This document shows positions 14,680 through 16,187 of a DNA stretch of 64,000 nucleotides, piece by piece. The translations under genes and the position numbers were made by a program. Each line of letters starts with the position of its first letter. Position 1 is the stretch's first letter. Source of the DNA: Trichosphaerium sp. ATCC 40318 (lineage: Eukaryota > Protista > Tubulinea); contig JALMLS010000473.1 of the NCBI GenBank assembly GCA_038496445.1, positions 2,156 through 66,155 of the forward strand, in the 5' to 3' direction. Under the pieces are notes generated by a model, which was not told where the DNA came from, did not search any database, and was given only the letters and a program-made list of their open reading frames with translations.

Positions 14680-16187
14680 TTAGAAGCACTTTCTGTGTAC
14701 AATAGCTGGACCAGACTCATCGTATTCTTCTTTGGAGATCCACGTATTTGTAAAAGTGGTAAGGGAGGTAAGGATAGATCCTCCAATCCATACAGAGTAT
14801 TTTCTCTCAGGTGAAGCAATGATCTTGATCTTCATGGTAGAAGGAGCTAGAGCTGTCAACTCCTTTTGTATACGGTCAGCAACACCTGGGAACATAGTAG
14901 AACCGCCAGAAAGGACAACATTTCCATACAAGTCCCTACGGATATCAACATCGCACTTCATGATGGAGTTGTATGTTGTCTCGTGTATGCCTGCAGATTC
15001 CATACCAAGGAACGAAGGTTGGAAGAGAGCTTCTGGACATCTGAAACGCTCATTGCCGATAGTGATCACTTGACCGTCTGGTAACTCATAGGACTTCTCT
15101 ACTGAGGAAGATGAAGCAGCTGTGGCCATCTCTTGTTCAAAGTCTAGAGCAACATAGCAGAGTTTCTCCTTGATATCTCGTACGATTTCTCGTTCCGCTG
15201 TTGTGGTGAAAGAGTAACCACGTTCAGTGAGGATCTTCATTAAGTAATCAGTGATATCACGACCAGCCAAATCCAATCGCATGATAGCATGAGGTAGTGC
15301 GTAACCTTCATAAATTGGTACTGTGTGGGTAACACCATCACCAGAATCGAGGACAATACCTGAAAACAGTAAGTACATGACATACTTTAGAAGTTTTGTG
15401 CTTTCACTGAATTCTTACCGGTAGTACGTCCAGAAGCATACAAAGATAACACAGCCTGGATTGCCACATACATTGCCGGGGTGTTGAATGTATCAAACAT
15501 AATTTGGGTCATCTTCTCTCTAACAAGAATGTAAGAAAACAATTTGCAAGACAATAAACACGAAGGTAAACTTCGTTTCACTTCTAAAACACGAAGGTTC
15601 TTTGGGTTTTTATGGTTTACGTACAACATTTACGTGCACTAGAATTAGCTGAAGCAGTTTTTCCATTAAATTGCTTTCTCTGATTTCTTCACCTAGTACA
15701 AGCCCTTGTAGTAGACAATGGATCTGGTATGTGCAAAGTCGGGTTTGCTGGTGATGATGCACCTCGTGCTGTCTTCCCATCTATTGTCGGTCGCCCAAGG
15801 CACACAGGTGTTATGGTTGGTATGGGACAAAAAGACTCGTATGTCGGAGATGAGGCTCAATCAAAACGTGGTATCCTCACATTGAAATACCCAATTGAAC
15901 ATGGTATCGTCACTAACTGGGATGATATGGAGAAAATCTGGCATCACACCTTCTACAATGAACTCCGAGTTGCCCCAGAAGATCATCCAGTTCTCCTCAC
16001 TGAAGCTCCATTGAACCCTAAAGCTAACAGGTACGCAATTTCTTTTGACTTGGAAAAAAAGCGCTTTATTGTGATTTTTTTTGGTAGTCATTTAAGTTTC
16101 TTACTTAAGAAAGATAGAAAAAAGTCGATGTAATTAGATGCAGAACTGGTAAAAGTATTATGTTAGAGCCATACCATCATCATCCAT
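14680..16187 (-). CDS. act: Actin paralog 2 (canonical), rearranged: exons 1 (16175-16187), 3 (15419-15519), 4 (14680-15359) on minus; exon 2 on plus
   Basis: 13+334+101+680 = 1128 nt = 375 aa plus stop; splice phases compatible. Confidence 0.92.
15551..16072. other. Inverted segment bounded by the 8-bp inverted repeat ACAATAAA (15551-15558) / TTTATTGT (16065-16072)
   Basis: Re-inverting rebuilds intron 2, which then aligns with intron 2 of actin 1 (12908-12988). Confidence 0.8.
15697..16030 (+). CDS. act: Inverted exon 2 of actin paralog 2
   Basis: cacctag|TA CAA GCC CTT GTA GTA GAC AAT GGA TCT..GCT AAC AG|gtacgc; both splice sites intact on plus. Confidence 0.95.

Follow-up and report, generated by a model that had tools for sequence, protein, structure and literature searches.

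One of three actin genes (P1, P2, and P3) encoded in the analyzed window, that is, the whole stretch of 64,000 nucleotides, carries its second exon in reverse orientation. Comparison with P1 and P3 indicates that this inversion, found in P2, is derived, roughly balanced, and confined to this one gene. In our interpretation, it is present in the DNA molecules behind the assembly without having been built into the gene by design. With moderate confidence, we attribute it to a single one-off event in P2 that either is an artefact of amplification or assembly or is confined to one haplotype. Most likely, a collinear P2 exists in the organism or did so until very recently.

We re-read the window and rebuilt the gene from the following exons:

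16187-16175, minus strand: P2 exon 1, ATGGATGATGATG, 13 nt, followed by GTATGG (GT donor); collinear with P1 13389-13549
15697-16030, plus strand: P2 exon 2, 334 nt, codons 5-116, preceded by CACCTAG and followed by GTACGC
15519-15419, minus strand: P2 exon 3, 101 nt
15359-14680, minus strand: P2 exon 4, 680 nt including the stop codon

Exons 1, 3, and 4 are located on the minus strand and exon 2, together with its AG acceptor and GT donor, on the plus strand. This is the layout described in the first-pass annotation, and its coordinates match those of the rebuilt gene. Joined in the order 1-2-3-4, the exons give 1128 nt, corresponding to 375 codons and a stop codon with 0 internal stops, as had been predicted for the gene after re-inversion (375 amino acids without stops). 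The splice sites are intact in six out of six cases. A direct joint of exon 1 to exon 3 leads to the short peptide MDDDERR*, so that the earlier statement on skipping of exon 2 also holds. For genome annotation, the consequence is that the best-conserved of the three clustered actin genes will be annotated wrongly or as broken.

The two paralogs were located by a tblastn search of the rebuilt P2 protein against the window. Their positions and that of the reversed part of P2 are as follows:

12070-13438, minus strand: paralog P1, intact and collinear actin-like gene with four exons (13438-13426, 13319-12989, 12906-12806, 12746-12070), 373 amino acids
25694-27138, minus strand: paralog P3, intact and collinear actin-like gene with four exons (27138-27135, 26966-26636, 26543-26443, 26376-25694), 372 amino acids
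15667-16040, plus strand: core of the inverted block, the sole part of P2 that aligns reversed to P1 (89%) and P3 (83%)

All three genes have the three intron positions and phases in common, and pieces of P1 and P3 match PF00022 at 1e-77 to 1e-90 (Pfam). In BLASTN comparisons, the similarity among them extends through introns and flanks. P2 14461-15559 aligns to P1 11866-12947 on the same strand (87%), P2 15667-16040 aligns to P1 13346-12979 in inverted orientation (89%), and P2 16138-16295 aligns to P1 13389-13549 again on the same strand (80%). The same pattern was obtained for P3 against P2, with 83% in the inverted core, and the alignment between P1 and P3 keeps the same order and orientation throughout. 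Since P1 and P3 are collinear throughout and only 15667-16040 of P2 is reversed, the collinear order is ancestral and the flip is derived in P2.

The derived residues H73R, V76I, R95C, A138S, and T278I are common to P1 and P3 and absent from P2. This distribution conflicts with the DNA identity including introns and flanks, by which P1 groups with P2. The residues common to P1 and P3 could possibly be due to a root on the P2 branch, to parallel changes, or to gene conversion of P2 by a conventional actin located elsewhere.

According to the alignments, the breakpoints of the P2 inversion lie in introns 1 and 2, without visible loss of sequence. The junction zones and the short inverted repeats in and next to them, for which no strand is assigned, are:

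15559-15666: left junction zone, with 107 nt (15560-15666) lacking a significant match to the paralogs and the left breakpoint inside
16041-16137: right junction zone, 97 nt in which BLAST found no match to the paralogs, with the right breakpoint inside and a weak imperfect hairpin at 16046-16090
15551-15558: left arm of the outer 8-bp inverted repeat, ACAATAAA, adjoining the end of the collinear homology at 15559
16065-16072: right arm of the outer 8-bp inverted repeat, TTTATTGT, mate of 15551-15558
15658-15665: left arm of the inner 8-bp inverted repeat, TTTTTCCA, adjoining the start of the inverted homology at 15667
16051-16058: right arm of the inner 8-bp inverted repeat, TGGAAAAA, mate of 15658-15665

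If the block is turned back at the outer 8-mers, intron 2 is 73 nt long and can be aligned over its full length with the corresponding introns of P1 (82 nt) and P3 (92 nt). Intron 1 then measures 240 nt, compared to 106 nt in P1 and 168 nt in P3, and aligns at both of its exon-proximal ends. With intron 2 fully aligned and both ends of intron 1 aligned, nothing has therefore been visibly lost. In the re-inverted gene, the position of the left outer 8-mer corresponds to TTTATTTT in P1. We also scored each possible pair of breakpoints against the P1 and P3 introns and obtained a flat surface, with the best left positions at 15600-15632 and the best right positions at 16073-16079. The hairpin potential of the junctions is weak (z-scores of -2.0 to -2.6).

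Inserted filler or a transposon was considered as a source of the junction zones and rejected: relative to shuffled sequences, neither zone has a significant local match to P1, P3, or the surroundings of P2 on either strand. Their sequence has no further copy in the window, and no tandem repeat was detected in it by TRF. The left junction zone contains two copies of the motif AAACACGAAGGT (15556-15567 and 15587-15598, 31 nt apart). The motif is also found, over 12-13 nt and in the same orientation as the P2 copies, at the intron-2 acceptor of P1 (12909-12921), and the intron-2 acceptor of P2 itself differs from it by two bases. The copy at the P1 acceptor hints that part of the left zone may be old collinear intron-2 sequence, which would favor the inner 8-mer pair.

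The outer 8-mers, which the first-pass annotation had placed at 15551 and 16065, are both present. Their interpretation as pointer-like elements was not supported: the breakpoints fall into ordinary GT..AG introns, only one repeat pair is involved, a second, nested pair fits equally well, and no repeat of at least 6 nt connects the exon-1 side with the beginning of the inverted block as a second pointer of ciliates would do. Judged from its position, this inner pair would be an equally good breakpoint candidate, and both cannot be the breakpoint. In 49% of shuffles, the two intron intervals share an 8-bp inverted pair; the actual sequence has three. A pair with one arm no more than 10 nt away from a homology edge was obtained in 5-6% of shuffles or random window placements. 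The mere presence of the outer pair is at chance level, and its position abutting the edge is mildly unusual (P about 0.05-0.06). It is plausible, but not proven, that the short inverted repeat at the edge served as the microhomology used in the inversion. No inverted match of at least 8 nt has its arms in 15559-15696 and 16073-16174, where only chance-level 6-mers were found.

The coding state of P2 bears on the age of the event. Over 375 amino acids, the re-inverted protein is 92% identical to conventional actins, compared to ∼84% for P1 and ∼75% for P3, in agreement with the previous description of P2 as the most canonical of the three. The part encoded by exon 4 likewise reaches 92% as its best identity in the protein database, and nothing higher was found. 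Private changes at sites that are invariant in five conventional actins number 4 in P2, 24 in P1, and 47 in P3, and those of P2 are all conservative (E125D, L185I, L236V, and P332S). We divided Nei-Gojobori distances over the three branches P1, P2, and P3 and obtained dN/dS values of 0.23 for P2, 0.53 for P1, and 0.44 for P3 together with the internal branch. On the P2 branch, ∼16 changes are nonsynonymous and ∼21 are synonymous, which is far from the neutral expectation (binomial P about 1e-5). Even if the excess dN came wholly from a neutral phase, this phase would occupy at most about a quarter of the P2 branch, corresponding to ∼0.02 substitutions per site. Because 1128 nt contain no stop or frameshift, any period of decay must have been short. 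These data indicate that P2 was a working, constrained actin until very recently. Since its coding sequence is both intact and constrained, the flip would be very young, present in one haplotype only, or not present in the organism.

Two further candidate signals in P2 were rejected. Exon 2 has a higher dS than exons 3 and 4, which was considered as a mark of the inversion, but this holds for all three paralog pairs. The Rfam family mir-3533 matches P2 exon 4 at 14923-15006 on the minus strand below threshold (37.5 bits versus a gathering score of 104), probably owing to similarity to actin coding sequence.

We propose that P2 exon 2 was reversed very recently, when a single inversion affected about 0.4-0.5 kb between a point in intron 1 and a point in intron 2. 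It would have occurred by a template switch or by microhomology-mediated repair at an 8-bp inverted repeat. In the first case, which is the simplest route, synthesis would arrive at the left repeat arm and jump to the opposite strand at the right arm. The block would then be copied backwards, and a second switch back, once the repeat has been copied, would give a balanced inversion. Alternatively, two breaks rejoined via microhomology would lead to the same balanced product. The borderline significance of the 8-mers and the mutual exclusion of the two nested pairs as breakpoint count against this proposal.

From its structure, the event in P2 would work like a natural microinversion. The natural cases are 17-33 nt long, and short inverted repeats border all of them (Potapova et al. 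2022, PMC8755829), and a template-switch model has been put forward for such inversions (Loytynoja and Goldman 2017, PMC5453318). As in these cases, the P2 segment reads as the reverse complement of the ancestral arrangement, its flanks are collinear, and no sequence is visibly lost. The two nested perfect 8-mer pairs at its possible edges are candidates for the flanking repeats. In contrast to the known cases, the P2 segment is about 400-500 nt long, and its ancestral state is deduced from paralogs, not from an orthologue. A second comparison concerns multiple displacement amplification (MDA) with phi29, in which >85% of the chimeras are inverted and a complementarity of 2-21 nt is found at the start of >70% (Lasken and Stockwell 2007, PMC1855051). 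P2 likewise shows a local inversion, which may begin at a few complementary bases. However, its inversion is balanced and has two junctions, whereas a typical MDA chimera has one junction and an intervening deletion (PMC1855051).

An event in the cell and one in the test tube would look the same on sequence alone. Its balanced nature somewhat favors a cellular origin and argues against an artefact, since a balanced inversion needs two coordinated junctions, which are unusual both for amplification chimeras and for long-read consensus errors. The untouched coding sequence, on the other hand, speaks for an artefact or a single haplotype, and one of these two, as opposed to an inversion fixed in the organism, would most likely be the origin. 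A one-off microhomology inversion and an amplification or assembly chimera had already been ranked as the most parsimonious explanations, and the collinear paralogs and the intact, constrained P2 agree with this ranking.

A real inversion that is fixed (homozygous) and has just turned P2 into a pseudogene, tolerated thanks to the other actin genes, is a possible, though less probable, explanation. A balanced event with intact flanks and short inverted repeats at its edges is what natural microinversions look like (PMC8755829), and the relaxed constraint on P1 and P3 (dN/dS of 0.53 and 0.44) suggests that the cluster may be dispensable. No P2 transcript was found among the indexed runs, which contain at most 6% of the words of the stretch; this is weak evidence, as none of them was identified as belonging to this organism. 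Fixation would have to be extremely recent, however, because P2 shows no decay and its branch is far from neutral. The single artefactual or haplotype-restricted inversion stays our preferred explanation.

Searches of public data yielded sequences of other organisms. None of the indexed public DNA runs contains the stretch; its words were found only in metatranscriptomes of soil and biofilm, which contain 5-6% of them. Four of these metatranscriptomes were mapped on the stretch and gave thousands of 60-100-nt actin contigs, which derive from other organisms. Strand-changing joints between exon 2 and exon 3 were absent from these four data sets, which cover actins of other organisms and have zero depth on introns, UTRs, and flanks. 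In metagenome contigs, a 28-mer spanning the P2 intron 1/exon 2 boundary had no match. The 28-mer of the collinear exon 2-exon 3 junction was found in one metagenome contig (L001), which encodes the actin of another organism with 78% nucleotide identity. Three ORFs looked up by exact sequence had no entry in the protein databases, and P2 was not found among protein records.

It is very unlikely that the P2 flip belongs to a genome-wide habit, in which this marine amoeba carries many exon-sized inversions in its sequenced DNA and restores them, in the DNA of some nuclei or at the RNA level, so that normal proteins are made. If true, this would mean a scrambling system outside the ciliates, acting at short inverted repeats within introns. 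The P2 inversion would gain biological importance only if such flips proved to be numerous in long reads of unamplified DNA and the mRNAs were intact.

Actin I of stichotrich ciliates is a scrambled gene that resembles P2: both encode actin, have one coding block inverted, and show a short repeat where this block ends. In ciliates, IESs delimit the blocks, each junction carries a pair of pointers, and unscrambling takes place in a somatic nucleus of its own. P2 differs from ciliate scrambled genes in that its block edges lie inside GT..AG introns whose ends align with those of the P1 and P3 introns, that at most one junction pair has a convincing repeat, that its paralogs are collinear, and that no unscrambled copy is known. 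We rejected P2 as a scrambled gene of the ciliate type, given that it has neither a pointer at every junction nor IES boundaries. A switch operated by a site-specific invertase is likewise not supported: the 8-bp repeats occur at chance frequency, and the 16 ORFs scanned encode no recombinase domain.

A programmed DNA rearrangement would restore the orientation of the block via the 8-bp repeats in part of the cells or life stages, either serving as an on/off switch or resembling the unscrambling of ciliates, and is highly improbable. A perfect 8-bp inverted repeat on either side of the block and the perfect actin frame restored by re-inversion would be in line with it. But 8-bp inverted pairs arise in half of the shuffles and two nested pairs are equally good, the breakpoints are in ordinary spliceosomal introns with P1 and P3 collinear, no recombinase or integrase domain was detected in 16 window ORFs (the subset scanned), and a collinear P2 copy was not found in the public runs, metagenome contigs, or gene records searched.

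Trans-splicing between opposite strands occurs in Drosophila mod(mdg4) and in split genes of Giardia; for mod(mdg4), the arrangement is conserved and the mRNA has been demonstrated. P2 is similar to mod(mdg4) in having the exons of one protein on both strands, but differs from it in that its arrangement is without conservation or a demonstrated mRNA. A rescue at the RNA level, with transcripts of both strands trans-spliced from exon 1 to 2 to 3, would fit the six intact splice sites and the constrained coding sequence of P2, but is just as improbable as programmed rearrangement: it requires two trans-splicing events and an intronic plus-strand promoter, the arrangement is absent from P1 and P3 and hence has no evolutionary depth, the four metatranscriptomes (with actins of other organisms) contain no cross-strand exon 2-exon 3 contig, and the single contig with the junction 28-mer is the 78% identical actin of another organism. 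Taken together, neither pointers nor a switch nor trans-splicing received support in P2, and a one-off inversion is again the explanation we prefer.

The neighborhood of the cluster contains further repeats and genes. A 1.37-kb inverted repeat with 94% identity (4977-6305 and 23983-25348) encloses ∼17.7 kb with P1, P2, and an F-box/LRR gene. No Pfam match was obtained for the ORFs of this repeat, which could give rise to a large inversion of the entire block between its arms. The F-box/LRR gene is an intronless ORF of 509 amino acids with F-box and LRR_6 domains (9842-11371, plus strand), whose best database relatives, some of them MMETSP transcripts, are just 27-45% identical. A direct repeat of ∼625 nt with 94.6% identity is located at 4-628 and 4020-4643, and each copy contains an ORF with a weak transmembrane-type Pfam match. 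A MORN-repeat ORF of 415 amino acids is encoded at 42723-43970 on the plus strand, with internal repeats at 43369-43955. Two 204-nt direct repeats at 46641-46844 and 48332-48535 are 100% identical and are probably the LTRs of a young element. A 140-nt repeat with 91% identity (16301-16439 and 48738-48885) has one copy adjoining this LTR element at 46.6-48.5 kb. Its other copy, at 16301, starts 6 nt past the upstream end of the P1-P2 homology, ∼114 nt upstream of the P2 start codon.
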